Shown piece after piece: positions 39,450 to 55,562 of a DNA stretch of 64,000 nucleotides (its first letter is position 1; every line of letters starts with the position of its first letter). Made by a program: the position numbers and the translations under genes. The notes beneath the pieces were generated by a model. It saw nothing but the letters and a program-made list of their open reading frames with translations, made no database searches and was not told where the DNA came from. Location: the IMG/VR virus record IMGVR_UViG_3300022602_000024, positions 62,001-126,000 of that record; one strand, 5' to 3'.

Positions 39450-39722
39450 TTATCGTTTTAGTAACCACATCATGTGCTCTTGAGCATTGTGCCATCTATA
39501 TTCCCATACAGGCGATCCAGGTCCGGTCCATACGGCAGCACCAACAAATCCTTTTTTGAGCCAAATACGTTTTTGGCTTAAATCGCATCGTTGTGGTGTT
39601 AATGCAAAACGTTCTTCCCACTCGGCTCTACGATAAAATGCACCATCTGCATCATCTATCCATCGGTTGTTTGACATGGCCCGCTTTCCTAGATATCCTG
39701 TGCCCATCATCAGGTGCCCCAC
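39450..39722 (-). CDS. Hypothetical protein
   Basis: 90-aa ORF. Confidence 0.5.
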   Translation of the reverse strand: MGHLMMGTGYLGKRAMSNNRWIDDADGAFYRRAEWEERFALTPQRCDLSQKRIWLKKGFVGAAVWTGPGSPVWEYRWHNAQEHMMWLLKR

Positions 39723-40555
39723 TCGTTCTTGAACAATGGCACTTGTAGTCGATCACTGTAACGCCAGCCACGTTTCATTGCGGCTAGTGCTACATTCCTT
39801 GCATTTAACGTGTAAACATTCTCTACACCGCCCACAGGCATGATATAAACATGCCCTTTAAACCCTGCTGATCTAAATTCTCTTACTGCACGTTCTGCAT
39901 CTAACAAATCTTCTTCAGTGGCTACAACAAGTTTAAGATATACTGTACCAACTTGTTCATATTCGCATACAATCTCGGGTCGGATAGCATCCGCCCACTT
40001 CTCGCCACTAGCAGGAAGTTTAGCACTTACGCTGAATGTGATTTCTCCATTTTTCCATCTAGCCCATTCTTGCAAATATCGTTTAAATTCTAGAGTTAAC
40101 TTTTGCGTGCCATTTGTTTCAAATGTGATTTCTTTCAAGTCTGACATTTTAGGATGATCCAGCAAGTCTGGATAAGCACGTTGCCATCCTAGCAATGGCT
40201 CGCCTCCTGTGATGACAAGGTGCTCATCGATCCAGGTCTTGTATGGGAGAATGTGCATGATTCTATCTGCAATGGCGTCTGTTGTGAGCATTGGACTAAG
40301 TTCTTTAAAATCAGGATGCCAACTAGCATAGCTGTCACAACCCGTAGATACAAGAGGAAGTTCTTCATATTTGTTAAAGTGGTAAACGACTTGTGCAATA
40401 TCATCAGCTTCGGTACTGAGTTCACCACGTGGCATACCAAAGCCGGCACATTTAAAGTTACAACCAAATGTGCGTAAGAATACCGACGGCACACCCATAT
40501 AGCGACCTTCTCCTTGTACGCTATAAAACAATTCTGCGATTTTGAGTTTACTCAT
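39710..40555 (-). CDS. queE: 7-carboxy-7-deazaguanine synthase (radical SAM)
   Basis: 'ELFYSVQGEG', 'VFLRTFGCNFKC...CDS', 'ITGGEPL', 'FETNGT', 'SAKL', 'SDRLQV'. Confidence 0.88.
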   Translation of the reverse strand: MSKLKIAELFYSVQGEGRYMGVPSVFLRTFGCNFKCAGFGMPRGELSTEADDIAQVVYHFNKYEELPLVSTGCDSYASWHPDFKELSPMLTTDAIADRIMHILPYKTWIDEHLVITGGEPLLGWQRAYPDLLDHPKMSDLKEITFETNGTQKLTLEFKRYLQEWARWKNGEITFSVSAKLPASGEKWADAIRPEIVCEYEQVGTVYLKLVVATEEDLLDAERAVREFRSAGFKGHVYIMPVGGVENVYTLNARNVALAAMKRGWRYSDRLQVPLFKNEWGT

Positions 40556-40820
40556 AGATTGATGACCATTTCTTAAGTTTTTCAATTTTGTGTTGCTTTG
40601 CAATGTCTAATTGTACAGTATCTAGTACACCTTGGTCAACTAAAATGTCGATTAATGCCAACATATCTCCAACTTCCATTACCAAAGTTTCTCTGTGCGG
40701 TAAATTAGTATGATGCGAAAGTTCATCTAATCCAAATCTTCTGATTTTACTAACTTCTACTATTACTTCTGCACATTCTTCTTGTAGTATACCCAAGGCT
40801 TCTTCTATTTTTGAATTCAT
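40548..40820 (-). CDS. MazG-like NTP pyrophosphohydrolase
   Basis: 'LQEECAEV...EVGDMLA' all-alpha NTP-PPase motif. Confidence 0.7.
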   Translation of the reverse strand: MNSKIEEALGILQEECAEVIVEVSKIRRFGLDELSHHTNLPHRETLVMEVGDMLALIDILVDQGVLDTVQLDIAKQHKIEKLKKWSSIYE

Positions 40821-42085
40821 GATATATTATGTCTGTTGAATTGTTCTATTAACCAAGGAAATAGTGTGGGCCAGCTGGTTCCGCGCCTGCGGTCTAATTC
40901 GTTTAAGTAGGCATACATTTCTTTTAGTTTTGAAATATTTGGTTTACTAACTGCTACTTGTTGTCTAATGCCCTTCATATACGGAGTAAAATTAGCATAC
41001 CAAGAATCCAATGATGCAGTTTCTTCCATTACTGCAATAATCTTTGCAAAATCATCATCGAACACATCTCCTCCTAAGTAATCGGGATTCAACGGCTGTG
41101 GATCTTGTACAGTCATAAAGTTCTGGTATATGGGACGCTGGCGCCTCCAACCATTCATCTTACTCATTAAGTCTGGCATGGTTTTGATACTCAATGTGTT
41201 AATAGCACTATTGATATTTAGAACGATCCAATCCTGGCTGACCAAATATTCAAAGTTTTTCTCCCATCGATCCAAGTTCAACGGAAAACGCACATATTCC
41301 TGTTCCGGACCCCAGCAATCAATACTGCCAGTGATCTGTAGAGTTTTCATTTTGCCATCTTGTACAATCTTTTTAAATCGTTCAATTTTGTTTATTAAAC
41401 GATCAGTACTACAGTTAAGATTAGTAACAATGTTAAAGAACAATTCAGGATTACTGTGTTGCTCCACAAAATCCAAACATTCGTCAAACTCCTGTTGAAA
41501 GAAAGGTTCTCCTCCTAAGAATTGAAAGTGTGTAACTTGATTGTAGTGTTGATCCCACCAGGCCCAAAACTTTTCCACATACGCACGCCGGTTGGCGTCA
41601 ACTTGATAGTTACTATTTAATTCAAATGTTGCATATTTCCAATCACCAAACTTTTTGTTTTCGGCTTGCCATGCGCTGGAGTAATGCGGCCCGCAGTAGA
41701 TACATTTTAAATCACATGTGTTATCAAAGTATACTTCTACCATCTTCGGTACTACACTGGTTGCAGTAGGATCAGTATATACTTCGTTGGGGGTTACATG
41801 TTGCAATTTTTCATTGTTGAAATGTCTATCACTGTAACCACCAGCATCTTCAATTTTGCGACAGTATTCGCAACCATTGCCAGGCCAAGAGCCGTCTAAC
41901 ATCAGTTGACGATCGCGTTGCTTTTCTGGCAAGTTATGAAAATCGTCAAAAGAGTCTAAGTCAAACTTATACTGACGTGTCCGATGGCAACTTGCGCTGG
42001 CGCTGTTGGCCATGTATATTGTGCTCCAAGTCCACTTTAGTTGGCACGTTGGATCTATGTTGATTGGCCATGTTTTTTGAGTCAT
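40817..42085 (-). CDS. Radical SAM protein, paralogue of 4949 and 6321
   Basis: CDLKCIYC, 'LGGEPF'; N-terminal CQLKW...SCHR...CEYC. Confidence 0.82.
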   Translation of the reverse strand: MTQKTWPINIDPTCQLKWTWSTIYMANSASASCHRTRQYKFDLDSFDDFHNLPEKQRDRQLMLDGSWPGNGCEYCRKIEDAGGYSDRHFNNEKLQHVTPNEVYTDPTATSVVPKMVEVYFDNTCDLKCIYCGPHYSSAWQAENKKFGDWKYATFELNSNYQVDANRRAYVEKFWAWWDQHYNQVTHFQFLGGEPFFQQEFDECLDFVEQHSNPELFFNIVTNLNCSTDRLINKIERFKKIVQDGKMKTLQITGSIDCWGPEQEYVRFPLNLDRWEKNFEYLVSQDWIVLNINSAINTLSIKTMPDLMSKMNGWRRQRPIYQNFMTVQDPQPLNPDYLGGDVFDDDFAKIIAVMEETASLDSWYANFTPYMKGIRQQVAVSKPNISKLKEMYAYLNELDRRRGTSWPTLFPWLIEQFNRHNIS

Positions 42086-42120
42086 GTGTGTTTTCTCTGT
42101 ATTCTTTTTTGGCTCTACGC

Positions 42121-43326
42121 TCAATGTGATTCATTAGTTTTTTGGTCGACATTTTTAATTATCTCGGTTACAGTTTTAGCAGTATATGGACCTAGTGTCC
42201 ATCCTAAGTGCCCGTGTCCTGTATTATAAAACACTTTTGCATTTTTGTCACTCTGTTTGATGATAGGCATCATGTTTGGCGTCATTGGGCGAAGGCAAGC
42301 ATATTGTGTGTAATCGTGTGTATTGATATTTGGAAAGTTTGTTTTGATCCACTTTAACAAAGGCTCAATTCTAGCACGAGTGATATCATAATTTTCCCCT
42401 GCTAGTTCAGCAGTCCCAGCTACACGAAACTTATTACCTAAACTTGAAGTAACAATTTTGGCTTCGTCGTCTAACAAACTTACTTTAGGCAAGTATTTGG
42501 CGTCAACATTGTTAATAGTAACACTATATCCTTTGATAGGGTATACTCCGATGTTGTCGCCGATTTGTTCAGCAAGCTCTGTGCTGCCCACTCCATTTGC
42601 ACCCACCACTGCATCATAATCTTCAGTTAATGTTTCTAGATCTTCGATCTTCCATTCATAAAAGAATTCAACCGCATATTTGTTTTTAAGGATATCTGCA
42701 AGTTGGTAACAAAACTTGTGTATATCTCCAGTCCAGTCACTGGGAGTAAATGTTGCGCCAACAACTCCATCAACATCAACCAACGCAGGATCTATAGTGC
42801 TGACAGCAGAAGGAGCAACCTCAACTCTATCTAATCCATTTGCATTGTATAACTTGGTAACTGCTTGTGCATTTTGCCAATAACTGTCTTTTTTATAGAA
42901 ATGCAAAATACCACAGTTGCTGCGATCAAACTCGATGGTTTCTTCTGCACAGATCTCATCGTACAATCTGCGACTCTCCAAAGCCATTTTTACAGTTGCG
43001 GCAGTATTTTTGGGACCTTCATTTCGAATAGTTGCCCACAAGAACCGAACTACCCAACGCCACATGGCCCAATCTAAACGCCAAGGGCGGAATAGAAATG
43101 GAGCATCTTTGGTAAACATCCACTTGATGCCTTTGTATACATTGCTCCATGATGTCCATGTTTCACTATTGCTGACAGATATTTGTCCACCATTGGCAAA
43201 ACTGGTTTTCATACCAGCATAGCGTTCTGCTTCGTATACCGTAACTTCATATCCTTCTCTTGCAAGATAATACGCAGTTGTGACTCCAGTGATACCTGCC
43301 CCGATTACTGCTACTGTTTTAGTCAT
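42121..43326 (-). CDS. dadA: FAD-dependent D-amino acid dehydrogenase
   Basis: 'GAGITGVTTAYYL', 'TSFANGGQIS', 'YPIKGYS', 'LRPMTPN', 'NTGHGHLGWT'. Confidence 0.85.
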   Translation of the reverse strand: MTKTVAVIGAGITGVTTAYYLAREGYEVTVYEAERYAGMKTSFANGGQISVSNSETWTSWSNVYKGIKWMFTKDAPFLFRPWRLDWAMWRWVVRFLWATIRNEGPKNTAATVKMALESRRLYDEICAEETIEFDRSNCGILHFYKKDSYWQNAQAVTKLYNANGLDRVEVAPSAVSTIDPALVDVDGVVGATFTPSDWTGDIHKFCYQLADILKNKYAVEFFYEWKIEDLETLTEDYDAVVGANGVGSTELAEQIGDNIGVYPIKGYSVTINNVDAKYLPKVSLLDDEAKIVTSSLGNKFRVAGTAELAGENYDITRARIEPLLKWIKTNFPNINTHDYTQYACLRPMTPNMMPIIKQSDKNAKVFYNTGHGHLGWTLGPYTAKTVTEIIKNVDQKTNESH

Positions 43327-43664
43327 TAATGATTCCGTTTCCCGTCAAATACACAGTTAAAAACAAAGTCAGTGTTGCAGTTGTTGATTACACGATGGAA
43401 AGCACCGTCTGGGATTAAAACAATATCTCCACCTTTGACTGGGAACGGCTCATCAGTTTCATCGCCCACAATCATTTGACCATAGCCCGAAATAAAGATA
43501 TAAACTTCTTCTTGTCCGGGGTGGCGATGACCCCGTGTTTGTTGTCCGGGGTGTAGTTGTGTTTGGCTCAAGACCAAGTTATTTAATGTCTTGTTGTCGA
43601 TTAATCGATAGGTTTCATTATCTTTGACAACTTCTCCGCCTATATTGTTGATGTTTAATGTCAT
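43326..43664 (-). CDS. Cupin-domain protein
   Basis: 'HRHPGQEEVY...G.G...GDIVLIPDGAFHRV.N'. Confidence 0.8.
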   Translation of the reverse strand: MTLNINNIGGEVVKDNETYRLIDNKTLNNLVLSQTQLHPGQQTRGHRHPGQEEVYIFISGYGQMIVGDETDEPFPVKGGDIVLIPDGAFHRVINNCNTDFVFNCVFDGKRNH

Positions 43665-43780
43665 GATAGCAAATCCTCATTCCACTCTCTATGACCCTCT
43701 CTAAAGGCCATATTGGCTTGTGTTTCTCTAACTTCTACACGATAGCACCATAAACGTTGTTCTAACCTTGCGTTAAACAT
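43661..43780 (-). pseudogene. Remnant 3' end of a second queD allele (39-aa mini-ORF)
   Basis: Reads MFNARLEQRLWCYRVEVRETQANMAFREGHREWNEDLLS, versus the QueD C-terminus DRVWCSKVEVRETPSNMAYRQGHREDGEF. Confidence 0.8.
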
Positions 43781-44078
43781 TTTTTAATCCTATTCTACTA
43801 TAACCTAACTTTGACTTGAGTTCCCTGCTTTTCTTCTCTGGTTTCCATGCTCTAGGATCAACTGTTTCGCCTGTGAGTTCATAACGAAAGTCTGGATCGT
43901 AAACCATATAGCCCAACTTGTTCCATTTGATTACTCCATCGTCAAATAGAAAAATACAACCACGACACATACAGAAACTGGCACCGTTGTCACTCATTAC
44001 ATTGCCATTCACTGTGCCAACATATTTGACTACATTGCCCTGGTGCATTTCTCTTAGTGCTTGGTAATAATCAATCAT
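43773..44078 (-). CDS. Hypothetical protein
   Basis: 101-aa ORF. Confidence 0.6.
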   Translation of the reverse strand: MIDYYQALREMHQGNVVKYVGTVNGNVMSDNGASFCMCRGCIFLFDDGVIKWNKLGYMVYDPDFRYELTGETVDPRAWKPEKKSRELKSKLGYSRIGLKNV

Positions 44079-44305
44079 TCTTCAACTCCAAAAACAAACT
44101 TGATACGGTTGGCAACTACCTTGCCATCATATCGTGTGTCGTTGGCAACATCTAAACATTCGTTGATGATTAGTTCAGCAAACTTAGCCAAACGGATCTT
44201 ATCCCATTCTTGAATTTTGAATCCATCTTCGGGATCAAATTGATATGTTTTATCGGCAGATAAGTTAGCCTGTTCGGTAAGTTGTTTTATCTTCTGTTCG
44301 TTCAT
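44075..44305 (-). CDS. Hypothetical protein
   Basis: 76 aa, 'KFAELIINEC' motif common in small phage ORFs. Confidence 0.6.
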   Translation of the reverse strand: MNEQKIKQLTEQANLSADKTYQFDPEDGFKIQEWDKIRLAKFAELIINECLDVANDTRYDGKVVANRIKFVFGVEE

Positions 44306-44321
44306 AGGTTAAAAGCGTTAT

Positions 44322-44801
44322 TTAAATAAACTCGCCGTCTTCGCGGTGACCCTGGCGATAGGCCATATTTGACGGAGTTTCTCTAACTTCAACTTTTGAA
44401 CACCAAACTCGGTCTGCTTCAGACTTACCGCAATTTGGCAAGAAGATAGTATTCACATACTCATATAGAAAATCGGCAATGCCTTCGCATCCGGTTTTTT
44501 CTACTTCTGTAATTTTTGCCAAACCTAATGCACCTAACTGTTTGATGGTATCATAGTACGGATCGTCTTGAGCCAATAGTAGAACATGGTCAAAGTATTC
44601 TTCTAAAAAGTCCTTGAGTGGGCGTAAACCACCGTAATCAAAACACCAATTGCGGGCGTCAAGGTCATCACACTCAAATTCAAATTTGAATGATAGTGCG
44701 TAACCATGGATAAGATTACAATGACTGTCAGCCCTCCATTGACGATATGCCACTGGGGCTAAATGTGAATATTCTTTTGTTGATATAAATTTTTTAGACA
44801 T
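44322..44801 (-). CDS. queD: 6-carboxy-5,6,7,8-tetrahydropterin synthase
   Basis: 'HCNLIHGY', 'DYGGL', 'FDHVLL', 'CEGIA', 'VEVRETPSN'. Confidence 0.85.
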   Translation of the reverse strand: MSKKFISTKEYSHLAPVAYRQWRADSHCNLIHGYALSFKFEFECDDLDARNWCFDYGGLRPLKDFLEEYFDHVLLLAQDDPYYDTIKQLGALGLAKITEVEKTGCEGIADFLYEYVNTIFLPNCGKSEADRVWCSKVEVRETPSNMAYRQGHREDGEFI

Positions 44802-44807
44802 GCTGGT

Positions 44808-44875: not shown

Positions 44876-44887
44876 TTGAATATGTAT

Positions 44888-45395: not shown

Positions 45396-46564
45396 TTAAA
45401 ATTTCCCACACATTGATTGATAGCAGTTTCTGCTTGTGTATGATTATATAGTTCAAAACCTAGGGTGTCAAATAGATACCAGTTATAATTTGCTGAACCT
45501 GGTACAGCGTTTTGTACCCAGGCAGCTTGTGCCCATGGTATATATTCATCGAAGCCGATTCCCGCAACAGGGGTTATGACTGAAGAAATATTACAAAATG
45601 CAGATATTTTTGCAACTAGCAAGTTGTAGTTAGGTGGCGGAATAGACGAGAAATTTCCTCCATTGAATATCAGATTCCATAAATCTACATTTAATCCAAC
45701 ACCTGTATCTGTTGGAGAAGCACGAAAATAATCTAATATCAGGGGTTTGTTGTTGTGAGATTTACTAAGTGTTTGTACATAGTTTACTATGTCTAATCCG
45801 TTGGTGTCATGGTAATATGAATTTACAATATCAGTGACATTTGTGGTAGTTGTGGACATCAAGGGAAAATTAAATCCTGTACTGATGTAGTCAACTAAAT
45901 CATAAACCGGAGTATCGTAACTTGCCATATATGATAATTTTCCATTAAACACATTTTTAATAGAAGAAAATAATGTTTGCCAGTACAGCAAGTACGGCGC
46001 CTGATCAAATCCTACCTGTAAATCACCTAAATATATACCGTTAACATTGTGTTGTTGTGCTAATACTGCTACAGACTTGTCGTAGGTTGTTATAGTATCA
46101 AACATGGTGGCAGCATTAAAGTTTACACCAACTGAAGTACTAGTTAATCCATTATCGAGCCCATCTGTTATAGCAATCATAATCCATACCACTAGCCCTT
46201 GACTTTTAGCATAATCCACTACACGCCAAAAATCTTTGGGTAAAGTTCTTGGTTGGGCAGGTACTGCATTAAGATCTAACTGGCCAGTATCTGTATTAAC
46301 TGGTACTTCTGTTTGGAAAACAATAGTATTGTAGCCAACCTTTTTAATATGGTCGACCATTGGTGTCATCCCTGCATATGATGTTGTTGTTACACCATTT
46401 ATATTAAGTGAGGAATCGTCAAACCGATAATCGACCCATGCCAATGATAATTTATTTGGCGGGGTATTGTTAATTACTTGCGTCGGAACTGTTGTAGAAG
46501 TCGAACTTCCGCCCCCACCACAGGCAGTTAATAGCACTGCCAGGCAACATAGTAAGTATTTCAT
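45392..46564 (-). CDS. Predicted lipoprotein with a glycoside-hydrolase-like TIM barrel (GH113-like)
   Basis: Signal peptide and lipobox 'MKYLLCCLAVLLTAC', GGGGSST linker, 'AQQHNVNGIYLG', 'VFNGKLSY'. Confidence 0.5.
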   Translation of the reverse strand: MKYLLCCLAVLLTACGGGGSSTSTTVPTQVINNTPPNKLSLAWVDYRFDDSSLNINGVTTTSYAGMTPMVDHIKKVGYNTIVFQTEVPVNTDTGQLDLNAVPAQPRTLPKDFWRVVDYAKSQGLVVWIMIAITDGLDNGLTSTSVGVNFNAATMFDTITTYDKSVAVLAQQHNVNGIYLGDLQVGFDQAPYLLYWQTLFSSIKNVFNGKLSYMASYDTPVYDLVDYISTGFNFPLMSTTTTNVTDIVNSYYHDTNGLDIVNYVQTLSKSHNNKPLILDYFRASPTDTGVGLNVDLWNLIFNGGNFSSIPPPNYNLLVAKISAFCNISSVITPVAGIGFDEYIPWAQAAWVQNAVPGSANYNWYLFDTLGFELYNHTQAETAINQCVGNFK

Positions 46565-47010
46565 TTTGCCTTGGATATTAGATATTGTTCGTGTTGTATC
46601 CAACCTTTTTTAGTCAGGAAACCCCATTCACGTGCATGAGGTCCGGGCATAAACAATGTCCAAGTTTCTACTTCGGGATCTAGTTCAATTCTGTGATAAC
46701 TGGTAGCGCCACAGACTCTAAAACTACCGGCACCACGCCAAGTGCAGGTTTCGGCAATCTTTTTGCCTTGGCCATCAAATATTGGTGTCCACTCGTAGTA
46801 GCCACCCTTTAGGATAAGACTAGCATAAGGCCAAGGATGATCATGCACGTCATCGGGATCTGATTTAAGAAACCGATGCAGAAATACGTTAAAGGGGAAC
46901 CAAGTACGTTCTTTAAGGAATACATAGTATCTTTCTAAATAGGGTTCATTATCAACCCTGTCCATGATAATTCGTTTGCGTCCTAGACGTTCAAGTAGCT
47001 TAATAATCAT
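46561..47010 (-). CDS. Cupin-like protein
   Basis: 'HDHPW...ILKGGYYE...HRI...WTLF..GP..REWGF'. Confidence 0.6.
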   Translation of the reverse strand: MIIKLLERLGRKRIIMDRVDNEPYLERYYVFLKERTWFPFNVFLHRFLKSDPDDVHDHPWPYASLILKGGYYEWTPIFDGQGKKIAETCTWRGAGSFRVCGATSYHRIELDPEVETWTLFMPGPHAREWGFLTKKGWIQHEQYLISKAK

Positions 47011-47092: not shown

Positions 47093-47842
47093 TTAGCAAG
47101 AATACTCTTGTTGCAGTTTAACATTGTCAAAGAATTCCTTCTTTGTACCTGCATCATCCTTGAATGCGCCTTTAAGGACTGTGGTTTGTGTTAGACTGCT
47201 CTTGGCCATAATACCACGGTTTTCGCAACATCCATGAGTCATTTGCATATACACACCAATGTCCGATGCACCAGTGGCTGCACCTATTTCTTTAGCAATG
47301 TCATTACAAAGTTCCTCCTGGAGAGTACCACGTCGGGCACACCATTGGGCGATTCGGGAATACTTGCTGAGTCCAATGAGCTTTTCCGCGGCAATAATGC
47401 CAATATAAGCAACACCAGATACGGGTTGGTGATGATGGCTACACATACTGCGAAGCTCACTGCGCACAACCAACATACCTTCGTAGCGGTCTTGCGAATC
47501 ATTTGGGAATGCTGTTGCGTCGGGTGCTGAATCATATCTTCCACTCATTACTTCATTGATGTACATTTTTGCCAGGCGTTTGGCAGTACCTTTACTACTG
47601 GGATCTGTTTCGGTATCGATTAGCAAAGTCTTTAACACTTGCTCAAATGCCTCTGTTGCTTCTTCGATTAATTTTTCTCTAATAGCAGGACTATCTACAT
47701 ATTCGCTGATGTTGTCGTTGGCCCAGAATCTCTTGCCATCACGCCGCATTTTAAAACGTAATACATCTGCTAGCGTTGATTCTTCATAGCCGCCGTCACC
47801 GGCCATGGCGTCTAGTGCAGTTTCTTTTTTCTTTTTTGTCAA
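47093..47842 (-). CDS. folE: GTP cyclohydrolase I
   Basis: 'TAKRLAKMY', 'SMCSHHH', 'IGLSKYSRI', 'LQEEL', 'HGCCENRG'; TTG start with GGAG RBS. Confidence 0.93.
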   Translation of the reverse strand: MTKKKKETALDAMAGDGGYEESTLADVLRFKMRRDGKRFWANDNISEYVDSPAIREKLIEEATEAFEQVLKTLLIDTETDPSSKGTAKRLAKMYINEVMSGRYDSAPDATAFPNDSQDRYEGMLVVRSELRSMCSHHHQPVSGVAYIGIIAAEKLIGLSKYSRIAQWCARRGTLQEELCNDIAKEIGAATGASDIGVYMQMTHGCCENRGIMAKSSLTQTTVLKGAFKDDAGTKKEFFDNVKLQQEYSC

Positions 47843-47879: not shown

Positions 47880-48488
47880 TCATACTATGATTGTGATTTG
47901 TCTCAAATCTGGATAAGCAACAAATTCGGGTACTGGATTCAGCTCTTTGATACCCTCTAACAAAGCCAGTCCTTGTTCCGCTTCTTCGATAGTGGGTTTG
48001 TAATGATAGCCGACCTTAAAAGTCTGTTGGTTTTCCCAAGGACTAATAGTTAAGTCTCTACCATCATATCTTTGTTGCAAAATTGCGTGATACGCTTCTG
48101 CATCATCTAACAGTATAGCACCTCCACGACCTATGTGTAAAGGTTTTCCATGTCCAAAACTTAAACATTGTATTTGTTTTGGGCGATACATGTTGCGTTC
48201 AAGCCGGCGAGCACTGTCCCATATTCGTGTACCTTCGAACTTGTATTCACCGACCCATTGCTGTCTGTGTGGCAAAGTGTCTGGATAGTACTCATATTCA
48301 ATGCCCAACTTGTGCATCAGCATAGGAATACTCAAATAAGTAAAGGGCGTAAATGAGCATTGTTTAATTTGATCATACCGTAAGCATAACTCTATTGCGT
48401 GAGTACAACAATCAGTCATGATTGCATAAGGTGCTCCTGTAAACTCAGCTAGAGCACGTTCAAATTTTAAAATCTTATCAAAACTCAT
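47880..48488 (-). CDS. Short DegT-like PLP-dependent aminotransferase
   Basis: 'TDCCTHAIEL', 'WDSA', 'CLSFGHGKPL..GRGGAIL'; only about 200 aa. Confidence 0.7.
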   Translation of the reverse strand: MSFDKILKFERALAEFTGAPYAIMTDCCTHAIELCLRYDQIKQCSFTPFTYLSIPMLMHKLGIEYEYYPDTLPHRQQWVGEYKFEGTRIWDSARRLERNMYRPKQIQCLSFGHGKPLHIGRGGAILLDDAEAYHAILQQRYDGRDLTISPWENQQTFKVGYHYKPTIEEAEQGLALLEGIKELNPVPEFVAYPDLRQITIIV

Positions 48489-49450
48489 CTTGTATACCAC
48501 TTATAAGCACTATCTACAATAGTGTCAATGTCACTGTATTGGGGTTGCCATAGTAACACTTCTTTGGCCTTGGCTGCTGATGCCATCAATGTTGCAGGAT
48601 CCCCGGCACGCATGGGTCCAAATATGTAATCAAGTCCATATTTTCTTCTCACATATTCAGCTATTTCACGATTGCTAACACCAGTATTGGTACTGAGATT
48701 AAATCGATATGCCCCCGGTTGTGGATAGTCATCCAACAAGAAGCCCACTGCTTGAATATGTGCAGTGGCCAAGTCCCATACGTGTATGTAATCACGCACA
48801 CACGTACCGTCATCAGTGGAAAAATGTCCACCGTTGATCACAAACGGCTTTTTTGCAATGCTGGCTTCTAGTGCACGAGCAATGATGTGTGTAGCACCAG
48901 GTTCTTGCCCGAGATCATGTGTGAAGGGTTCTGCACCTGCGGCATTGAAGTACCTAAAGCAAACACTATGAATACCGTAGGCTCTACTGTAATCATTCAG
49001 TATGCGTTCAATCATGGCCTTGGTTTGGCCATAAGGACTGATTGGTTGTACTGGTGCATCTTCAGTAATAGGAAACGTTTCGGGTTCGCCGTAGACGCTG
49101 GCACTGCTACTGAACAAGATCACAGGCTTTTTAGGCATATCTTTGATCACATTCAGCATGGTGATAGTCTTGGCCACATTGTTGTCATAGTATTCACCGG
49201 GATCAGTGACACTGGGTCCAACAAGACTAGTGCCGGCACAATGCACAATCACGTCAGGTTCATACATGACCATGGCCGATAGAGCTACAGGACTGGCATA
49301 GTCATAAGCAATGAAACTGTCCATACCTTTCATGGTATGCACACGATATTCGCGATCTAATAGGATTACTTGATCGCCATGTTGCTTGAATGCTCTCGCA
49401 ACATGGCTACCAATATAACCACAACCACCAGTTACTAGTATTTTACGCAT
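48485..49450 (-). CDS. galE: UDP-glucose 4-epimerase
   Basis: 'TGGCGYIGSH', 'FSSSASVYG', 'PYGQTK', 'RYFNAAGA', 'DGTCVRDYIHV.DLA'. Confidence 0.88.
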   Translation of the reverse strand: MRKILVTGGCGYIGSHVARAFKQHGDQVILLDREYRVHTMKGMDSFIAYDYASPVALSAMVMYEPDVIVHCAGTSLVGPSVTDPGEYYDNNVAKTITMLNVIKDMPKKPVILFSSSASVYGEPETFPITEDAPVQPISPYGQTKAMIERILNDYSRAYGIHSVCFRYFNAAGAEPFTHDLGQEPGATHIIARALEASIAKKPFVINGGHFSTDDGTCVRDYIHVWDLATAHIQAVGFLLDDYPQPGAYRFNLSTNTGVSNREIAEYVRRKYGLDYIFGPMRAGDPATLMASAAKAKEVLLWQPQYSDIDTIVDSAYKWYTR

Positions 49451-50323: not shown

Positions 50324-50325
50324 GA

Positions 50326-50538: not shown

Positions 50539-50540
50539 GA

Positions 50541-50771
50541 TTAAGCCTTTGCTTCTTTACGTGCGTTTTTAGTTTCAGTAATTTCGTTACGGCGTGCTTT
50601 AACTGCTTTGCCCAACTCTGCTAATGCTTTACGAGCACGAGTACCTGCAGCACTATTACCTGCTTCGAACTTGGCATGTTCTGCTTGATATACAGCCAAT
50701 GCTGACTCAATGTCTGCATGTGCGTTTGTTTTTTCCGCTACTGGAGTTGCTACTGTTTTTGATGTTGCCAT
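50541..50771 (-). CDS. Histone H1-like (Hc1/HctA N-domain) DNA-binding protein
   Basis: 'KFEAGNSAAGTRARKAL.EL.K..KARR.EI'. Confidence 0.7.
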   Translation of the reverse strand: MATSKTVATPVAEKTNAHADIESALAVYQAEHAKFEAGNSAAGTRARKALAELGKAVKARRNEITETKNARKEAKA

Positions 50772-50797
50772 TTTAATTTCCTTTAAGTGTTTAATGA

Positions 50798-51070
50798 TTA
50801 TATACTAATTTGCTGACTATCGCTAGTCTTTTTCTGACGTTTTGGCTTTACTGCTACCGTTTCTTTTGGTGCACAAACCTCACGTATTTCTCTACGCAGG
50901 GCTTCGTCGTCCCACTTGAGTTCTGTCTGCCCGTTTTCGTAACGGGTAACAGTCAAGTGACTGCCTACTGTTACCTTGGGCCATGATTCTTTCACAGCCT
51001 TTGGTTTTTTAACTGCGGGCTTTGCAACCTTTTCTACTACAGGTTCTTCTTTCTTTTTACGTGTTACCAT
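50798..51070 (-). CDS. Hypothetical basic protein
   Basis: 90-aa ORF. Confidence 0.6.
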   Translation of the reverse strand: MVTRKKKEEPVVEKVAKPAVKKPKAVKESWPKVTVGSHLTVTRYENGQTELKWDDEALRREIREVCAPKETVAVKPKRQKKTSDSQQISI

Positions 51071-51071
51071 A

Positions 51072-52250
51072 TCAATACTTGCTTTCGTGTGTGTGCTTAC
51101 GATAGTCTGTGCTCATACGCAACCATTTCTCGCCTGAACCTTCTAAGATATCAACGATGCGATCAATAGTACCATCAGTCCAGTTACTGATATCTCCAGT
51201 ATTATGATTCCACTTTAACAATGTTTTTAGTTTGTCCATTGCATCGGTTAACGACCAAGGTACATAAAGCCTATTATGATCATTGGCAAAAGTTTCTGGA
51301 AAACTTCTATAAGCAGGATAAAGAACATTACACCCAAGAGTGTCTGCTTCTGAGACTGTGTTAGATACCCAGTCTTGTAACGCACAATTAAACAATACAC
51401 GAGTATCATTAAGAAGATTGTAGTAGTCATTTTTCTCTAAGTCCTCATAAATTGTCAATAAGCCACGTTGTTGCAAGTCACGTGTACGTGCCATGTAACT
51501 GTCGTTATTGCTTTTTAACTTAGCACCACTGAAGATACAGAATTCTACTGGAATACTATTACCATATTGACGGTTCCATTCTTCAATCAAGTCCATAAAG
51601 AAGTCGGGTTGTTTCTCTTGATCCCAACGTGCCGCGAACCCTACCCGCATGGCACGTTGATCAAATGGCTTTAATTCGCCAGCAACACGACCACGTACTT
51701 CTGCTTTGCCAAATGCCAGACCGCTAATATTATAGATGGGTGCCTCCCAGCCGGCAATCTTCATGTGCATGACCATTTCTTCATTGCTGGCTAACACACC
51801 ATCAACAAATGAATCCACCATCTTTTCATACAAGCCCATCCACCGGCTCATGCCCCATACATGTACGAAATCATCCGGATCGATTGACTGAGCAAGACAG
51901 CGGACAAATATACGAGGACGCATATTAGCAGGAACTTGATTAAGAATGTACGGCAAGCTCTCAATACCGGGCTGAAACATGTCTTCAAAGTAAACAACAT
52001 CTTCATTGGTAACTTCTCCTGCTTTCATTTTAGCGACTAGATTCATCAACTGACTCATACCAAAGTATGTGCGACCATGTGCATCTAACACCTGTCCTGT
52101 TACAATGGCTTGATCATTGCTGAGTGTTTCACCTGTGACCAGTTCGTAGTTGATACCTCTACGTTTAAAGACTCTTTCATTCCAGTCTTGTAACTGTAGT
52201 GTATATCTTGCTTTATAGGGCTCCAAGCCCATGTACCATAGTTTTCTCAT
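51072..52250 (-). CDS. GT-B fold glycosyltransferase
   Basis: 'FAARWDQEKQP', 'FNCALQDWVSNTVSEADTLGCNVLYPAYRSFPE' (GT4-like C-terminal motif). Confidence 0.75.
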   Translation of the reverse strand: MRKLWYMGLEPYKARYTLQLQDWNERVFKRRGINYELVTGETLSNDQAIVTGQVLDAHGRTYFGMSQLMNLVAKMKAGEVTNEDVVYFEDMFQPGIESLPYILNQVPANMRPRIFVRCLAQSIDPDDFVHVWGMSRWMGLYEKMVDSFVDGVLASNEEMVMHMKIAGWEAPIYNISGLAFGKAEVRGRVAGELKPFDQRAMRVGFAARWDQEKQPDFFMDLIEEWNRQYGNSIPVEFCIFSGAKLKSNNDSYMARTRDLQQRGLLTIYEDLEKNDYYNLLNDTRVLFNCALQDWVSNTVSEADTLGCNVLYPAYRSFPETFANDHNRLYVPWSLTDAMDKLKTLLKWNHNTGDISNWTDGTIDRIVDILEGSGEKWLRMSTDYRKHTHESKY

Positions 52251-52615
52251 TGTTTCTCCACAAATGGCGCTAAGTTGGGTGGCGTCCATCCCACCGGTTT
52301 GAGGACCTTGCCATCTTCACGCTTGCGTACCTTGCCGTCGTTGCCAATTTTAGCAAAGTTGGTGGCCATGACTTCTTTCCAAGCACCTTCGGCATCAAAG
52401 CCTGCGCTATGAATAGCACCAATGGCAACAACTAGTATATCAATCAAGGCATCTAACATTTCTACGCGATCATCTTCATTATTAGCCACAAACAATTCAT
52501 TGTATTCTTCTTTGATAAGATTTAGATACAGTGCAAATTGTTCGTTGTTAAAACCTGCTACTGTTTGATCACAGGCACGCATGAACTTTTCTTGATCTCG
52601 AAAAGGATTGGTCAT
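52247..52615 (-). CDS. MazG/PRA-PH-like nucleotide pyrophosphohydrolase
   Basis: 'LIKEEYNEL...EMLDALIDILVV...EVMATNFAK...REDGKVLKP'. Confidence 0.8.
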   Translation of the reverse strand: MTNPFRDQEKFMRACDQTVAGFNNEQFALYLNLIKEEYNELFVANNEDDRVEMLDALIDILVVAIGAIHSAGFDAEGAWKEVMATNFAKIGNDGKVRKREDGKVLKPVGWTPPNLAPFVEKQ

Positions 52616-52887
52616 TATTGATCTCTGTTGAATCTGTAGTTAGTGTTGCGTGGTTGGAAGTCTTTGCGTTCACGTCTTGGAGTACGCCATTGATCCCAGG
52701 GCTCGCGACCTTTAAGCATTTTGATATACTCGCCATAAGGACTTGGAGCACGCTCATTGTATAGTGTTTTTTCATCAAACGGATATCCGTAATCCTGACA
52801 AAAACGTTGATAGTTTTCGAGGTCTTCGAAAATGTTTAAGACTTCGGGTTTCATGCGAAGATACTTCTTAAGCCATTCTTGGGCCAT
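52615..52887 (-). CDS. Hypothetical protein
   Basis: 90 aa, AAGGA RBS. Confidence 0.65.
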   Translation of the reverse strand: MAQEWLKKYLRMKPEVLNIFEDLENYQRFCQDYGYPFDEKTLYNERAPSPYGEYIKMLKGREPWDQWRTPRRERKDFQPRNTNYRFNRDQ

Positions 52888-52896
52888 GTTAGTTCC

Positions 52897-53340
52897 TTAA
52901 ATTACAATTGATTGTGCAGGACGGGTAAGGTTGTAGTTGATAACGCATCCGTTTTCGCCGTCCTCGGATACGTCAATAGTGACATTACGGTTAGGGTAAC
53001 GTGCGGCTATTTGTAGATATAAATCATCTGCGATCATTTCGCATGACTTATAGTCTAATGCTAGTATAGCATCTTTGTAGAGATTTTCCAACCAACGTTT
53101 AAATTGAATAAACTCAATGTCTCGATCGTTATGGAAAACATCAATACTGACACGAAAGTGAAAGATATGCCTGTGTGGCGTGCCGAGGAATGATACATCA
53201 TATTCATCGCCGGTTGCTAGCATGGGGTCAGTTGCGGCAGCAGGATAGCAGTGAATACCTTCTTTGGTAAAAGATACCCATATCTGTCTAGGTGCCGCAG
53301 TCATAATGCGATCAATGGTGTCTCTTTGTTCTTGATTCAT
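52897..53340 (-). CDS. QueD-like T-fold protein (LxxxHRHxF; DpdL-like)
   Basis: 'EGIHCYP', 'FLGTPHRHIFHF', 'DRDIEF', 'SCEMIA', 'VSEDGENG'. Confidence 0.7.
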   Translation of the reverse strand: MNQEQRDTIDRIMTAAPRQIWVSFTKEGIHCYPAAATDPMLATGDEYDVSFLGTPHRHIFHFRVSIDVFHNDRDIEFIQFKRWLENLYKDAILALDYKSCEMIADDLYLQIAARYPNRNVTIDVSEDGENGCVINYNLTRPAQSIVI

Positions 53341-53852
53341 TTGATTACTTCGTCTTTGGTGTATTGTGACCAGTCTGTAAATACCTTACGATCGCGCAGT
53401 TCGTGTAGACTGTGGCACCATACTCCGGGGTTTGTTGCGCGGAAATCTTTATCGTCTAACTTGATTGTAGCATTATATCCCAACAGTTGTATATAGGGCA
53501 ATTTAACCGAAATCATTGGGATAAAGTTATTGTAATCAGTTAGCCCACTTTCAGTTAGGCCCTCGACACAGGTACTGTCGATATCTAATGTACATAAGTA
53601 GCCTTTTTGTAATAGGGCTAGAATCATTTCTTCCCACGGCTGCCATCCTTGCGAATCATCAGTTGCCATTTTTGGAAAACTCATGTTGGCACCAAAATAG
53701 ATATGCTCACATTTAGTAGTGTGTGCCCATTCTTCAATTTTATCTACAGGTTGCACACCAACTACAAATAGTGTGCGTTTGCCCCGTGCTGGCGTATGTT
53801 CTACTTCAACACCAACAAAGAAATTGATGTCCTCGTGTCCTGCTCTAATCAT
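53337..53852 (-). CDS. Hypothetical protein between the TGT-like and QueD-like genes
   Basis: 171 aa, ATGA-coupled; 'GVEVEHTP', 'HIYFGANMSF', 'NPGVWCH'. Confidence 0.7.
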   Translation of the reverse strand: MIRAGHEDINFFVGVEVEHTPARGKRTLFVVGVQPVDKIEEWAHTTKCEHIYFGANMSFPKMATDDSQGWQPWEEMILALLQKGYLCTLDIDSTCVEGLTESGLTDYNNFIPMISVKLPYIQLLGYNATIKLDDKDFRATNPGVWCHSLHELRDRKVFTDWSQYTKDEVIK

Positions 53853-54037
53853 TTCGTGCTCTTAGATAGTTGATCAGCCTTTAGTTTAACAATATCTTCT
53901 TTAATATGCAACCGTTGTTTCTTCAATTTAGTAAGATGTTCGTCACTGAACACACCATTTCGTTCCATACCATCAATCTTTTTATCTAGTGTGGCGTGTT
54001 CTTTTTCTAAATGCTTAATACGTGCTTCAATTGTCAT
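53849..54037 (-). CDS. DUF465/YdcH-like small coiled-coil protein
   Basis: 'HLEKEHATLDKKI...LKKQRLHIKEDI'. Confidence 0.7.
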   Translation of the reverse strand: MTIEARIKHLEKEHATLDKKIDGMERNGVFSDEHLTKLKKQRLHIKEDIVKLKADQLSKSTK

Positions 54038-55562
54038 TGCTAATCTCCAAGGTATCTAGTTTTGATTCATCTAATTCTGGTTCTACATCTTCAACGATTT
54101 CAAATAGTTCATCAAACATGGCATTGCCGTTGATGGCCTTTTTACCTTTGAATCCACGAGTACCAATAATCTCTGTCCAGTATGTACTGTATTTTTCGAT
54201 GATAGCCATACTCTTGGCTTTTGTGGGTGCTGAAAAGATTTCTTCTACTAAATCTTCAAAGTATTCACCGCCAGGTCCTGAACTACGCATCATAGCAGGA
54301 TGCTCGCCAGCATCAAATCTACGATTGGCTTCTTGAACCGCAGTCAAGTGCATCCATACATTGTGTCCCATAAGCAGAGCATAACTAAAACTATCCCAAC
54401 TAGTCTTGCCTTCTTTGCCATTTTTATTTAGATCGCCAGGCTTGTAGATACAAATATCTTTCATTTGGAACAAGTCACTCAAGGGACTGTCTTCCCAACG
54501 TGGGTAAATGCCATCTGCAACTACACCCTGCGACCATTTACGTGTATCAGTGGCATACTTCTTGTCATCTGCACTTGGAGCCATTCTATAACTCCACTTG
54601 CCGTTGTCGGGAAATGCATTTTCAAAGTAAACTTGTCCGTTGGCAGTGGCAAGGAATGGACTGGCACAATCAAAAGATATAGTAAATGCGGGGTTAGCGT
54701 ATTTTCTTACATTCCTTTGAATCACGGTGAGTAGCACAGCCCATTCCAACTTTGATGTGCCCAAGAAGTGCATCCAATCGTGCACACCTTCTTGTAGCAA
54801 GCCATCGTATTTCAATGTAATCAAGCGTTTCAGTACCAAGTGAACATCGCACATGTTTTGTCCACCCATGGACCACCCATTAAAATGTGTATCAGGATAG
54901 ATATTAGGATCACAATACTGCTTCATCATGTCATACCAACGATCAGCATCCTTGTGATTGGCGCCTTGCAACACATTAAGAATCTTCATACCGCCGTTCT
55001 TAACGCCTTTACGGTTGTTCATCCAATATTCGTTGTTGTATTTGGTCGCATCAACTGCTTCTTGTAATGTGCTGATACCGCATTTGGCACCTGCAGCCTT
55101 ATCATGAATAACCCATGTAGGGATATCCAAGGTCATTCCATAGTCAGCTATGCCGTCCAGCCACTTGAGCACTGCCTCACGACGTGCTTGGGCCTTCGGG
55201 CATCCTGAACCAGCCTTCCAGTCGCCTTCCCATAATCCTTTGGCAATCTGGAATCCACCAGAGTCGCCTAGGATTAGTGTGTTGGGATCGCGATTTCGAA
55301 CCATGTCCTCTGACCAATCTTGCTTGGTAAGGTCTAGGTTAGCATGGCCGCCGGAGTAAAGCGACCATCGATATGGGAACAAGGCTTTCTGGGCATTAAG
55401 CCAATTCAGCTGTTCCATATCTGTCAAACCCTGCGGAAAACGTGCAGGGTCCACATATTGTTCGTTGCGTTGTTTGCCTACAAACGTAGCGTAAAAACCG
55501 CTGATAGCCGGAAGGAATACTGCATAATCCTTCTGCTTTGCGGTTAAATTATCTTGTGCCAT
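54027..55562 (-). CDS. TGT/DpdA-family guanine transglycosylase
   Basis: 'GDSGGFQI', 'MTLDIP', 'NVLQG', 'GWSMGG', 'HFLG', 'SFDCASP'; no C-terminal CxCxxC zinc site seen. Confidence 0.8.
   Translation of the reverse strand: MAQDNLTAKQKDYAVFLPAISGFYATFVGKQRNEQYVDPARFPQGLTDMEQLNWLNAQKALFPYRWSLYSGGHANLDLTKQDWSEDMVRNRDPNTLILGDSGGFQIAKGLWEGDWKAGSGCPKAQARREAVLKWLDGIADYGMTLDIPTWVIHDKAAGAKCGISTLQEAVDATKYNNEYWMNNRKGVKNGGMKILNVLQGANHKDADRWYDMMKQYCDPNIYPDTHFNGWSMGGQNMCDVHLVLKRLITLKYDGLLQEGVHDWMHFLGTSKLEWAVLLTVIQRNVRKYANPAFTISFDCASPFLATANGQVYFENAFPDNGKWSYRMAPSADDKKYATDTRKWSQGVVADGIYPRWEDSPLSDLFQMKDICIYKPGDLNKNGKEGKTSWDSFSYALLMGHNVWMHLTAVQEANRRFDAGEHPAMMRSSGPGGEYFEDLVEEIFSAPTKAKSMAIIEKYSTYWTEIIGTRGFKGKKAINGNAMFDELFEIVEDVEPELDESKLDTLEISNDN

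Follow-up and report, generated by a model that had tools for sequence, protein, structure and literature searches.

Which modified guanine does this jumbo-phage locus make, and does the glycosyltransferase encoded beside the deazaguanine genes take part in making it? The window is a stretch of 64,000 nucleotides of IMG/VR record IMGVR_UViG_3300022602_000024 (positions 62,001 to 126,000 of that record). A preliminary description, made from the sequence alone, had proposed a 7-deazaguanine modification system with no QueC in view, a DpdL-like QueD paralogue and a linked GT-B glycosyltransferase (GT). That observation is confirmed: every gene it had named is present at the stated coordinates, all on the minus strand. 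Its interpretation, according to which the phage makes CDG or 7-deazaguanine rather than preQ0/G+ and may glycosylate it, with GalE and a short DegT-like protein as possible sources of the sugar, is supported in part only.

Gene content of the locus

The precursor genes encode FolE, QueD and QueE. FolE (GTP cyclohydrolase I, 47093-47842) matches PF01227 (E 1.3e-37). The QueD/PTPS-family protein (44322-44801; PF01242, E 7e-15) is 71% identical to QueD of Acidovorax phage ACP17. It is a phage variant with the motif SHCxxxHGY, in which Cys28, His27 and His32 are conserved but two canonical zinc histidines are replaced, as in QueD of Cellulophaga phage phiST. The QueE-like radical SAM enzyme (CDG synthase) lies at 39710-40603 and matches phrog_2076 (E 1e-49), whereas the QueE NCBIfam models match below their cut-offs. 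Its real start is probably the ATG at 40555, which gives MSKLKIAELFYSVQGEG. It carries the motif FYSVQGEG and three invariant Cys arranged as CX3CX36C. No QueC is present in the window, as we found neither a SGGxDS PP-loop motif in six frames nor a tblastn hit with QueC of Escherichia coli or of phage Ps15. This absence concerns the window only, as the rest of the genome, probably more than 300 kb, was not scanned and could encode QueC. In the related phage Ps15, QueC occupies the slot beside the transglycosylase that GT and DpdL occupy here, which fits alternative tailoring modules.

A tightly packed run begins with a 511-aa TGT-like gene (54027-55562). It is followed by a small DUF465 coiled-coil protein (53849-54037; PF04325, E 1.4e-12), a 171-aa protein of unknown fold (u171, 53337-53852), a 147-aa DpdL homologue (52897-53340), a 90-aa protein of unknown function (u90, 52615-52887), a MazG-like NTP pyrophosphohydrolase (52247-52615; PF01503, E 4e-10; phrog_671, E 2e-37), and the GT (51072-52289). 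For u171, we found no family or PDB match, and the leads from the Atlas are below noise. Homologues are nevertheless encoded in Pseudomonas jumbo phage PA5oct (46%), in ACP17 (33%, next to its TGT-like gene), and in a second metagenomic lineage represented by loci L087-L089 (50%). A weak homologue of u90 sits in the same slot in L087.

Sugar genes come next. GalE, a UDP-glucose 4-epimerase (48485-49450; PF01370, E 5e-50), passes the NCBIfam equivalog cut-off for TIGR01179 (296.6 bits against 262.3). The DegT-like protein (47880-48500), which overlaps the end of GalE by 16 nt, really is short (206 aa). It matches PF01041 (E 4.5e-13) over two short stretches only, but keeps the PLP-lysine region SF..GK....G.GGA. 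A 149-aa protein without a family (46561-47010) is 51% identical to the product of a 156-aa gene lying two genes after the GT in L087, and is also found in locus L035. Upstream of the TGT-like gene lies a conserved 244-aa protein (u244, 57231-57965), separated from it in this window by a radical SAM/SPASM gene and a 207-aa gene. It is 31% identical to PA5oct EST35_0314, annotated in the record as a virion protein by MS. The module sits in the replication gene block, close to a family-B DNA polymerase (58954-61644; phrog_262, E 3e-193), and PA5oct, ACP17, Xanthomonas phage X1, Ps15, and L087 have the same arrangement.

We compared the locus with 80 related metagenomic loci, in which the order u244-TGT-like-u171-DpdL-u90-GT-GalE-DegT-FolE-QueD is fixed on one strand. 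Among the loci with enough sequence to hold each gene, u171 was present in 70 of 70, DpdL in 58 of 58, u90 in 50 of 55 (always between DpdL and GT), and GT in 43 of 43. u244 was present in 79 of 79 related loci, GalE in 38 of 39, and the DegT-like protein, at about 195-205 aa, in 33 of 36. GalE and the DegT-like gene directly follow the GT in most relatives. As the 80 loci are close relatives (74-86% identity), their synteny counts as one or two independent observations. Conversely, DUF465 was present in only 19 of 77 and MazG in only 5 of 56 related loci, and both appear to be accessory.

The transglycosylase-like protein, DpdL and the predicted glycosyltransferase

The TGT-like and GT assignments get no support from Pfam, PHROG, NCBIfam, or PADLOC on the window proteins themselves and required structure prediction and profile comparison. 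For the 511-aa protein, a confident AlphaFold model (pLDDT 90.7, pTM 0.88) matches TGT and ArcTGT only, these being the top seven Foldseek PDB hits (E 2e-7 to 2e-5). Comparison by hhalign with E. coli TGT (prob 91%) aligns DSGGFQ (residues 100-105), the base-binding Asp (D146), QG, GG, and the FDC nucleophile with D298. D100, S101, G103, H265, and D298 are invariant in 73 homologues, and D146 is present in 99% of them. The protein belongs to a very large, unannotated family in phages related to PA5oct. A grouping with tRNA-specific TGTs, together with modification of tRNA only, had been named in advance as a result that would refute the proposal. In profile comparisons, the protein is closer to phage DpdA2-like proteins, such as those of ACP17 (ASD50403, prob 96.6%), X1, and cyanophage BUCT-ZZ01, which are related to the nt-1 protein, than to tRNA TGT.

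The 147-aa protein is a real homologue of the published DpdL proteins (PMC10516641). By tblastn, it is 57% identical to ACP17 ASD50405 and 36% to phiST CGPG_00067, and it matches phrog_17812 (E 1e-34). Its motif is LGTPHRHIF. L52, H56, and H58 of the L...H(R)H.F signature are invariant, as are H30, H70, E76, E101, and E126, and R57 is nearly invariant. According to the literature, DpdL is a QueD-like T-fold protein. Our own comparisons did not confirm the DpdL-QueD relationship, as hhalign gave a prob of 7% and a PDB profile search found nothing. The decarboxylase activity on CDG proposed for DpdL has never been demonstrated, and the authors' own heterologous test in E. coli failed (PMC10516641), although homology to the published proteins is clear.

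The GT is predicted to be a GT-B, GT4-like enzyme. Its AlphaFold model (pLDDT 84, pTM 0.84) gave 288 Foldseek PDB hits with E<1e-3, led by MshA, BshA, and glycogen synthase (TM 0.6-0.7). The family profile hits GtfA/Gtf1 (E 3e-5), and homologues carry PF00534. R221, E225, K226, E314, and E332 are invariant, including the NDP-sugar-binding R-x4-K and Glu residues. A lack of conserved linkage of the GT had been proposed beforehand as grounds for rejecting its involvement, and this objection fails. Besides the 43 of 43 related loci, a GT homologue lies within 4 kb of DpdL, usually directly adjacent, in at least seven further phage lineages: PA5oct-like phages, ACP17, Xanthomonas X1/BUDD, Phosso, BCSR5, BUCT-ZZ01, and the L087-L089 lineage, where it is two genes away. 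This holds even where the TGT-like subtype differs. However, a GT is not needed for DpdL function in general, as phiST and Rhizobium phage RHph_I1_18 have DpdL without an adjacent GT.

What the module may make

These data suggest that this is the guanine-modification module of a jumbo phage related to PA5oct. FolE, a QueD-type T-fold enzyme, and QueE would turn GTP into 7-carboxy-7-deazaguanine (CDG). Without QueC, the pathway would not reach preQ0, and DpdL would instead process CDG, the literature proposing decarboxylation to 7-deazaguanine (DG). The 511-aa enzyme, which keeps the nucleophile, general acid, and base-binding Asp of TGT, would exchange guanine in phage DNA for the deazaguanine base. 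The GT, as a core member of the module, would add a sugar to the deazaguanine moiety, either on the free base before insertion or on the inserted base, using a UDP-hexose balanced by GalE. In this view, u171 and u90 are obligate partners of unknown role, and MazG and DUF465 are optional. What the analysis establishes is the gene content, the DpdL homology, the conserved catalytic residues, and the gene linkage. CDG synthesis follows from the family assignments, whereas base exchange in DNA is inferred from the fold, the active site, the position in the replication block, and the properties of PA5oct DNA, which resists restriction enzymes cutting at G-containing sites and is targeted by a nuclease that senses modified G. 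The role of the GT is inferred from conserved synteny only. We consider deazaguanine DNA modification well supported and very probable, a product derived from CDG or DG rather than preQ0 probable, and participation of the GT in the pathway somewhat more likely than not. A sugar on the base in virion DNA is a tentative proposal: no chemistry exists for this phage or any GT-bearing relative, 7-deazaguanine has no hydroxyl or amine side chain and thus no obvious acceptor for an O- or N-glycoside, and a CDG glycosyl ester would be unusual. We hold the composite, a deazaguanine DNA-modification module without preQ0 in which the GT takes part, with moderate confidence. If a sugar is indeed added, the product would be a guanine modification not yet described.

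The main alternative, which we consider unlikely but not negligible, is that the module makes plain 2'-deoxy-7-deazaguanosine (dDG) or dCDG, exactly as in phiST, and that GT, GalE, and the DegT-like protein are merely co-located and serve a virion protein, a host glycan, or another base. phiST DNA carries dDG with FolE, QueD, QueE, DpdL, DpdA3, and MazG and no GT, the missing acceptor group on DG points the same way, the closest structural neighbours of the GT act on small molecules and glycans, and a second, complete sugar pathway in the window (DegT plus SDR at 23-25 kb) shows that this phage also uses sugars for other purposes. However, a GT homologue lies between or beside the transglycosylase and DpdL in at least eight lineages with otherwise different neighbours and even different transglycosylase subtypes, which is hard to explain without a shared function. 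In addition, ACP17 DpdA plus DpdL without the GT gave no dDG in E. coli (PMC10516641).

Three other readings appear very unlikely. In a nucleotide-pool route, a phosphoribosyltransferase (PRTase) would convert the deazaguanine base to a nucleotide, which would be reduced, phosphorylated to the dNTP, and incorporated by the phage polymerase while MazG removes dGTP, the TGT-like protein having another role. PRTases act on CDG or preQ0 in tubercidin and toyocamycin biosynthesis, a PRTase sits in the module in PA5oct, BUCT-ZZ01, L035, L087, and Ps15, MazG-like genes lie beside DpdL here and in phiST, and the module is embedded among replication genes. Yet no PRTase was found in the window by tblastn with the PA5oct and BUCT-ZZ01 enzymes or by Pfam on the genes scanned, MazG is rare among the relatives, and the TGT-like gene is the most conserved member, with a complete transglycosylase active site. 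A PRTase is equally well explained as salvage of the guanine released by base exchange. The TGT-like enzyme might instead modify host or phage tRNA as a translation take-over device, as its best structural matches are tRNA-guanine transglycosylases and the fold alone does not tell the substrate. Against this, the window contains no tRNA genes, the gene sits beside the DNA polymerase in every lineage, the zinc subdomain of tRNA TGTs is absent, the protein is closer to DpdA2-like proteins, and PA5oct DNA itself is modified at G. Finally, FolE, PTPS-family proteins, and a GT4-type GT are the ingredients of pterin glycoside pathways, such as that of cyanobacterial biopterin glucosides, and the GT of a Synechococcus phage is 64% identical to the window GT. 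However, no sepiapterin-reductase-like gene was seen, and QueE, which commits the pterin to the deazapurine skeleton, and a transglycosylase are conserved parts of the same block.

Comparison with known systems

The dDG system of phiST (Cui/Hutinet et al., NAR 2023, PMC10516641) shares the precursor genes, the lack of QueC, a DpdL with the L...HRH.F motif, a MazG-like gene beside DpdL, a TGT-superfamily transglycosylase, and a position near the polymerase. However, its transglycosylase is a 259-aa DpdA3, only marginally similar to the 511-aa protein (hhalign prob 80%), and phiST has an AAA_18 kinase-like gene instead of GT, GalE, u171, and u90. In the ACP17 cluster (QueD, FolE, u171-like, a 424-aa DpdA2-like protein, GT, DpdL, QueE), whose dpdL was one of the two tested in the same study, the GT lies directly beside DpdL within the replication block, and a u171 homologue and the same variant QueD are present. 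Its transglycosylase is of the nt-1/DpdA2-like subtype, without BLAST-level similarity to the window protein and related only at profile level (E 5e-10), its GT is only 23% identical, and no GalE or DegT was seen nearby. PA5oct (Wroclawvirus; EST35_0314-0324) encodes the same subtype of large transglycosylase (32% identity, full length), followed by GT, DpdL, and QueE, with the u244 homologue and the same RNase H neighbour. Its block also contains a PRTase and a short epimerase-like gene, and its u171 homologue is 26 kb away. All these genes are annotated as hypothetical, and apart from the restriction resistance the modification has not been identified chemically.

In phage T4, similarly, GT-B enzymes (the alpha- and beta-glucosyltransferases) use a UDP-hexose to decorate a non-canonical base in phage DNA after replication. 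There, the base is a cytosine with a hydroxymethyl acceptor and the GT families are different, T4 GTs not being among the top structural matches of the window GT. Bacterial and archaeal tRNA-guanine transglycosylases (TGT, ArcTGT; PF01702) share with the 511-aa protein the TIM-barrel fold, DSGGFQ, the base-binding Asp, and the FDC nucleophile. The window protein differs from them in its low identity (about 14%, without a Pfam hit), in the lack of the zinc CxCxxC...H site, and in an extra C-terminal helical region.

Organization of the block and the precursor genes

All genes of the module lie on the minus strand, in a tightly packed block that starts just after a family-B DNA polymerase gene (58954-61644; phrog_262, E 3e-193). 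In order of transcription, the block encodes two conserved proteins of unknown function (58014-58979 and 57231-57965), a radical SAM/SPASM protein and a 207-aa protein that are both variable, the 511-aa TGT-like protein (54027-55562), a DUF465 protein, a 171-aa protein of unknown function (u171), the 147-aa DpdL-like protein, a 90-aa protein of unknown function (u90), a MazG-like pyrophosphatase, and the 405-aa predicted glycosyltransferase (GT). Six small genes follow, among them one (50541-50771, minus strand) that lies between the GT and GalE genes, matches the chlamydial histone H1-like Hc1 family (PF07432, E 7e-13), and was not detected in relatives. Next come GalE and a 206-aa DegT-like protein, FolE, several window-specific inserts, QueD, further inserts, and QueE. 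The inserts between QueD and QueE include a twitch radical SAM gene, a cupin gene, and a D-amino-acid-dehydrogenase-like flavoprotein gene (NF009074, 439 bits, below its cut-off). The last two (42121-43664, minus strand) were not found in any of 80 related loci. We considered that the short DegT-like gene might be a broken gene. This was rejected, as its length is conserved in 33 of 36 relatives and there is no room for a second piece. A megablast search of the 15.8-kb region against 50,697 phage records found nothing.

The window encodes the three enzymes leading to CDG. FolE is canonical (PF01227). QueE (39710-40555, minus strand) matches phrog_2076, most likely starts at the ATG at 40555 rather than at the TTG at 40603, and has the FYSVQGEG motif. 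Its three invariant cysteines are arranged as CX3CX36C, the third being displaced by an insertion of about 35 residues compared with the usual CX3CX2C of ACP17. The third cysteine is likewise displaced in the homologs in the loci that we numbered L001, L084, L085, and L087. QueD (44322-44801, minus strand) matches PF01242 and keeps its cysteine, but two of the three canonical zinc histidines are replaced (AYRQ for AHRL and HGY for HGH). The same replacements are found in phiST QueD, so this variant, also found in loci L002, L003, and L084, is compatible with a working pathway. No QueC was found in the window. The SGGxDS motif does not occur in any of the six frames, and tblastn searches with QueC of Escherichia coli or of phage Ps15 returned no hit. 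The combination of FolE, QueD, QueE, and a DpdA-like protein without QueC, which accompanies DpdL, holds for the 64-kb window and for about 10 kb on each side in the 80 relatives. The remainder of the genome was not searched for QueC, and the scan of the full genome for queC, queF, or gat-queC, proposed as a check in the preliminary description, was not made. The window contains no tRNA gene.

The 147-aa protein is a genuine homolog of the two DpdL proteins studied by Cui, Hutinet, and colleagues (PMC10516641). It is 57% identical to that of ACP17 (tblastn E 3e-39; blastp E 7e-49) and 36% identical to CGPG_00067 of phiST (tblastn E 1e-8; blastp E 2e-15). It carries LGTPHRHIF, corresponding to the LxxxHRHxF signature that replaces the CxxxHGH of QueD. 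Across 18 homologs, L52, which replaces the QueD cysteine, H56, H58, and F60 are invariant, as are a further upstream histidine and several acidic residues, and R57 is nearly invariant. DpdL keeps three histidines but lacks the cysteine, whereas the QueD proteins of DpdL-carrying phages keep the catalytic cysteine; we have no data on whether the two T-fold proteins work together. Our comparisons leave the T-fold relationship itself undecided. Alignment of the DpdL profile with the window QueD was not significant (hhalign probability 7%) and a profile search of the PDB found no QueD or PTPS, so that this relationship rests on the HHpred results reported in PMC10516641. CDG decarboxylase activity has been proposed but not demonstrated, as heterologous expression failed (PMC10516641), and it was not assayed here.

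The window also holds other genes of possible relevance. Eight radical SAM genes with CxxxCxxC motifs (4949-11509, plus strand; 40817-42124, 56169-57230, and 61688-62983, minus strand), to which we assigned no function, include five in tandem on the plus strand. The 435-aa one matches NF033640, twitch domain-containing radical SAM (243.7 bits, above its cut-off). Copies move in and out of the deazaguanine block in relatives. A Nol-like (NodU/CmcH-type) carbamoyltransferase gene (14905-16407, plus strand; phrog_1601, E 1e-90) lies next to the radical SAM array and a DUF6071/GDSL-like gene, and may belong to a separate sugar- or base-tailoring cluster. At 23047-26486 (minus strand), a gene for a full-length 372-aa DegT aminotransferase (PF01041, E 2.5e-75) overlaps a 324-aa ORF that carries a GxGxxG dinucleotide-binding motif and looks like an SDR epimerase/dehydratase. 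A thymidylate-synthase-family gene and a 168-aa ORF follow. The latter looks DHFR-like by eye but was not searched. This would be a second sugar pathway that could also feed a glycosyltransferase.

A large clade of predicted TGT-fold transglycosylases

The 511-aa protein is not recognized by any curated model: no family was found at E<=0.01 to 0.1 in Pfam (including PF01702), PHROGs, NCBIfam (including TGT), or PADLOC (including DpdA), and a single-sequence search of the PDB gave nothing. Nevertheless, it belongs to an enormous family. We retrieved more than 7,700 clusters at 90% identity, all unnamed and on contigs of up to 360 kb, and 950 clusters at 50% identity. One homolog (81% identity) lies on a 358,784-bp contig deposited as a Methanosarcina sp. 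metagenome-assembled genome, which is probably a jumbo-phage contig binned with an archaeon. Full-length homologs, all annotated as hypothetical, occur in eleven PA5oct-like Pseudomonas jumbo phages (32% identity), Sinorhizobium phage Phosso, and one Vibrio jumbo phage.

An alignment of 73 sequences gave an AlphaFold model with a pLDDT of 90.7 and a pTM of 0.88. The seven best Foldseek matches in the PDB are all bacterial TGT or archaeosine TGT (probability 1.00, E 2e-7 to 2e-5), and TIM barrels of other kinds follow only at E>1e-3. Viral hits include annotated phage TGTs. Profile comparison with E. coli TGT (hhalign probability 91%) aligns DSGGFQ, the base-binding Asp (D146), the QG and GG motifs, and the FDC nucleophile (D298). 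D100 of DSGGFQ and D298 are invariant and D146 is present in 99% of the 73 homologs, and all three align with the residues of the E. coli and Zymomonas mobilis TGTs (D102, D156, and D280 in the latter). The zinc site CxCxxC...H of TGT is absent, no Cys column being conserved above 64% in the family alignment.

The nearest named relatives are the DpdA2-like 416-437-aa proteins of ACP17, Xanthomonas phage X1, and BUCT-ZZ01 (hhalign E 5e-10 and 5e-8 for the ACP17/X1 type), followed by E. coli TGT (1e-6) and the more distant DpdA3 of phiST (1e-5). There is no BLAST-level match to any of them. The ACP17-type proteins are in turn 33-36% identical over 250 residues to a protein of nt-1 and KVP40-like vibriophages. 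DpdA2 was defined in nt-1, but we did not check that this match falls on the DpdA2 gene itself. These comparisons do not assign the protein to one of the named subfamilies DpdA1 to DpdA4: DpdA1, DpdA4, and bacterial DpdA were not compared, and the tree of TGT and DpdA clades suggested in the preliminary description was not built, as it would not be reliable at about 14% identity. We therefore treat the protein as a member of the TGT/DpdA superfamily that forms its own large clade nearest to DpdA2.

Linkage of a predicted GT4-like glycosyltransferase with DpdL

Neither Pfam, PHROGs, NCBIfam, or PADLOC nor a single-sequence search of the PDB gave a match for the 405-aa protein, but several lines of evidence identify it as a GT-B enzyme. 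Its family profile hits GT-B enzymes in the PDB (GtfA/Gtf1, E 3e-5). Its AlphaFold model (pLDDT 84) matches 288 PDB structures at E<1e-3, all GT-B and led by the GT4 enzymes MshA and BshA (TM 0.66-0.71). R221, E225, K226, E314, and E332 are invariant in an alignment of 45 homologs that did not include the PA5oct sequence. They correspond to the R-x4-K and C-terminal Glu pair expected for NDP-sugar binding in GT4 enzymes, an identification that rests on the profile alignment to GtfA and on general knowledge of GT4 enzymes. As for PF00534, the window protein has no match, the ACP17 and PA5oct homologs match below threshold, and the X1/BUDD branch carries it in precomputed tables, which leaves membership in this Pfam family unsettled. 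Donor and acceptor were not assayed, the adjacent GalE gene providing only context.

The linkage is the strongest new result. The preliminary description had named co-occurrence of the GT and u171 genes with the transglycosylase gene across phages as a test, and its absence for the GT as a refutation. A search with the single TGT-like protein returned only close relatives: 80 IMG/VR loci, whose TGT-like proteins are 74-86% identical to that of the window. They share the order u321-u244-TGT-like-u171-DpdL-u90-GT-GalE-DegT-FolE-QueD (u321 and u244 being conserved proteins of unknown function), all on one strand, with variable genes inserted between these members. Among loci with enough room for each gene, u171 is present in 70 of 70, DpdL in 58 of 58, GT in 43 of 43, GalE in 38 of 39, and the short DegT-like gene in 33 of 36, as against 5 of 56 for MazG and 19 of 77 for DUF465. 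These loci are close kin and count as few independent observations, but independent support comes from about eight lineages. A GT homolog lies directly beside DpdL in PA5oct-like phages, ACP17, Phosso, and BUCT-ZZ01, and within 4 kb of it in X1/BUDD and BCSR5.

In a second metagenomic lineage (L087-L089, ENA metagenome contigs of 27-91 kb), the TGT-like protein is 59% and DpdL 68% identical to those of the window. The slot after DpdL-u90 holds a PA5oct-type GT, 46% identical to that of PA5oct and 21% to that of the window. These relatives of the module also carry a PRTase, a HIT hydrolase, a SAICAR-synthase-like ligase, a cytidylyltransferase-like gene, and a short epimerase-like gene around the same core, which look like further tailoring or salvage steps. 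BUCT-ZZ01 combines a window-type GT (64% identity) with an ACP17-type transglycosylase. The GT therefore travels with DpdL rather than with one transglycosylase subtype. It is not universal, as phiST, RHph_I1_18, and several other DpdL phages show no GT. In Stenotrophomonas phage Ps15 the equivalent slot holds QueC, which fits QueC and DpdL-plus-GT being alternative tailoring modules. A gene annotated as myo-inositol-1-phosphate synthase (3520-4770) sits inside the FolE-PRTase-QueC-TGT-QueE block of this phage.

The partner proteins u171 and u90 matched no Pfam, PHROG, NCBIfam, or PADLOC model, and we have no explanation for their functions. For u171, a profile search of the PDB gave only summed weak hits to designed repeat proteins, which are artifacts. 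Two ESM Atlas searches gave scores of 0.70-0.89 with few shared features, which is noise level, and the PHP and glycosyltransferase-like labels among these hits are not evidence. Profile alignments found no u171 relative among the neighboring genes in X1, BUCT-ZZ01, or phiST.

Proposed mechanism and comparison with known systems

The conversion of GTP to CDG through FolE, QueD, and QueE, without a route to preQ0, follows from the assigned families. That the TGT-fold enzyme exchanges G in phage DNA is an inference with good support, given its intact active site, its place in the replication block, and the G-modified DNA of PA5oct, which carries a 32% identical homolog. This evidence is indirect, as insertion of a 7-deazaguanine into DNA was not assayed and none of our results is chemical. 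The conversion of CDG to 7-deazaguanine (DG) by DpdL is inferred from the literature only, and the addition of a hexose to the deazaguanine moiety by the GT, fed by GalE, from synteny only. The chemical difficulty is that DG has no acceptor group. If a sugar is added, DpdL, u171, or u90 must create or constitute the handle, or CDG itself is the acceptor; our data do not favor either. PRTases occur in the module in PA5oct, BUCT-ZZ01, the related locus L035, L087, and Ps15, whereas we found none in the window. They may salvage the guanine released by base exchange back to GMP and so feed FolE, or alternatively mark a nucleotide-level route.

A more far-reaching hypothesis, which we consider possible but less likely than not, is that phages carrying the DpdL-GT pair (this lineage, PA5oct, ACP17, X1, Phosso, and BUCT-ZZ01) replace guanine in their DNA with a sugar-bearing 7-deazaguanine derivative. 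That would be the first glycosylated purine in a natural DNA genome. It would be installed by a previously unclassified, very abundant DpdA-like clade, and the 171-aa and 90-aa proteins and/or DpdL would create the acceptor group. 7-Deazaguanine DNA modifications are a major phage counter-defense, and eight derivatives are known (PMC10516641). In the literature that we could search, none carries a sugar and no DpdA subfamily is named beyond DpdA4, and the GT partner is not mentioned in the deazaguanine papers whose text was examined. The GT, u171, and u90 may be the missing parts that explain why DpdA plus DpdL alone did not reproduce dDG in E. coli (PMC10516641). The module is carried by the cultured phages PA5oct, ACP17, X1, and BUCT-ZZ01, and PA5oct is a therapy candidate whose G modification is chemically unknown. 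These findings bear on the annotation of jumbo-phage metagenomes and on predicting how phages respond to restriction enzymes and modification-dependent nucleases.

The combination of deazaguanine synthesis and DpdL without QueC is already published for phiST and was noted for ACP17 (PMC10516641), and in PA5oct only QueE and a PTPS had been noticed. Relative to these descriptions, what is new is the recognition of the large transglycosylase clade, of the conserved GT partner, accompanied by GalE and a short DegT-like protein in this lineage, and of the conserved u171 and u90 partners.
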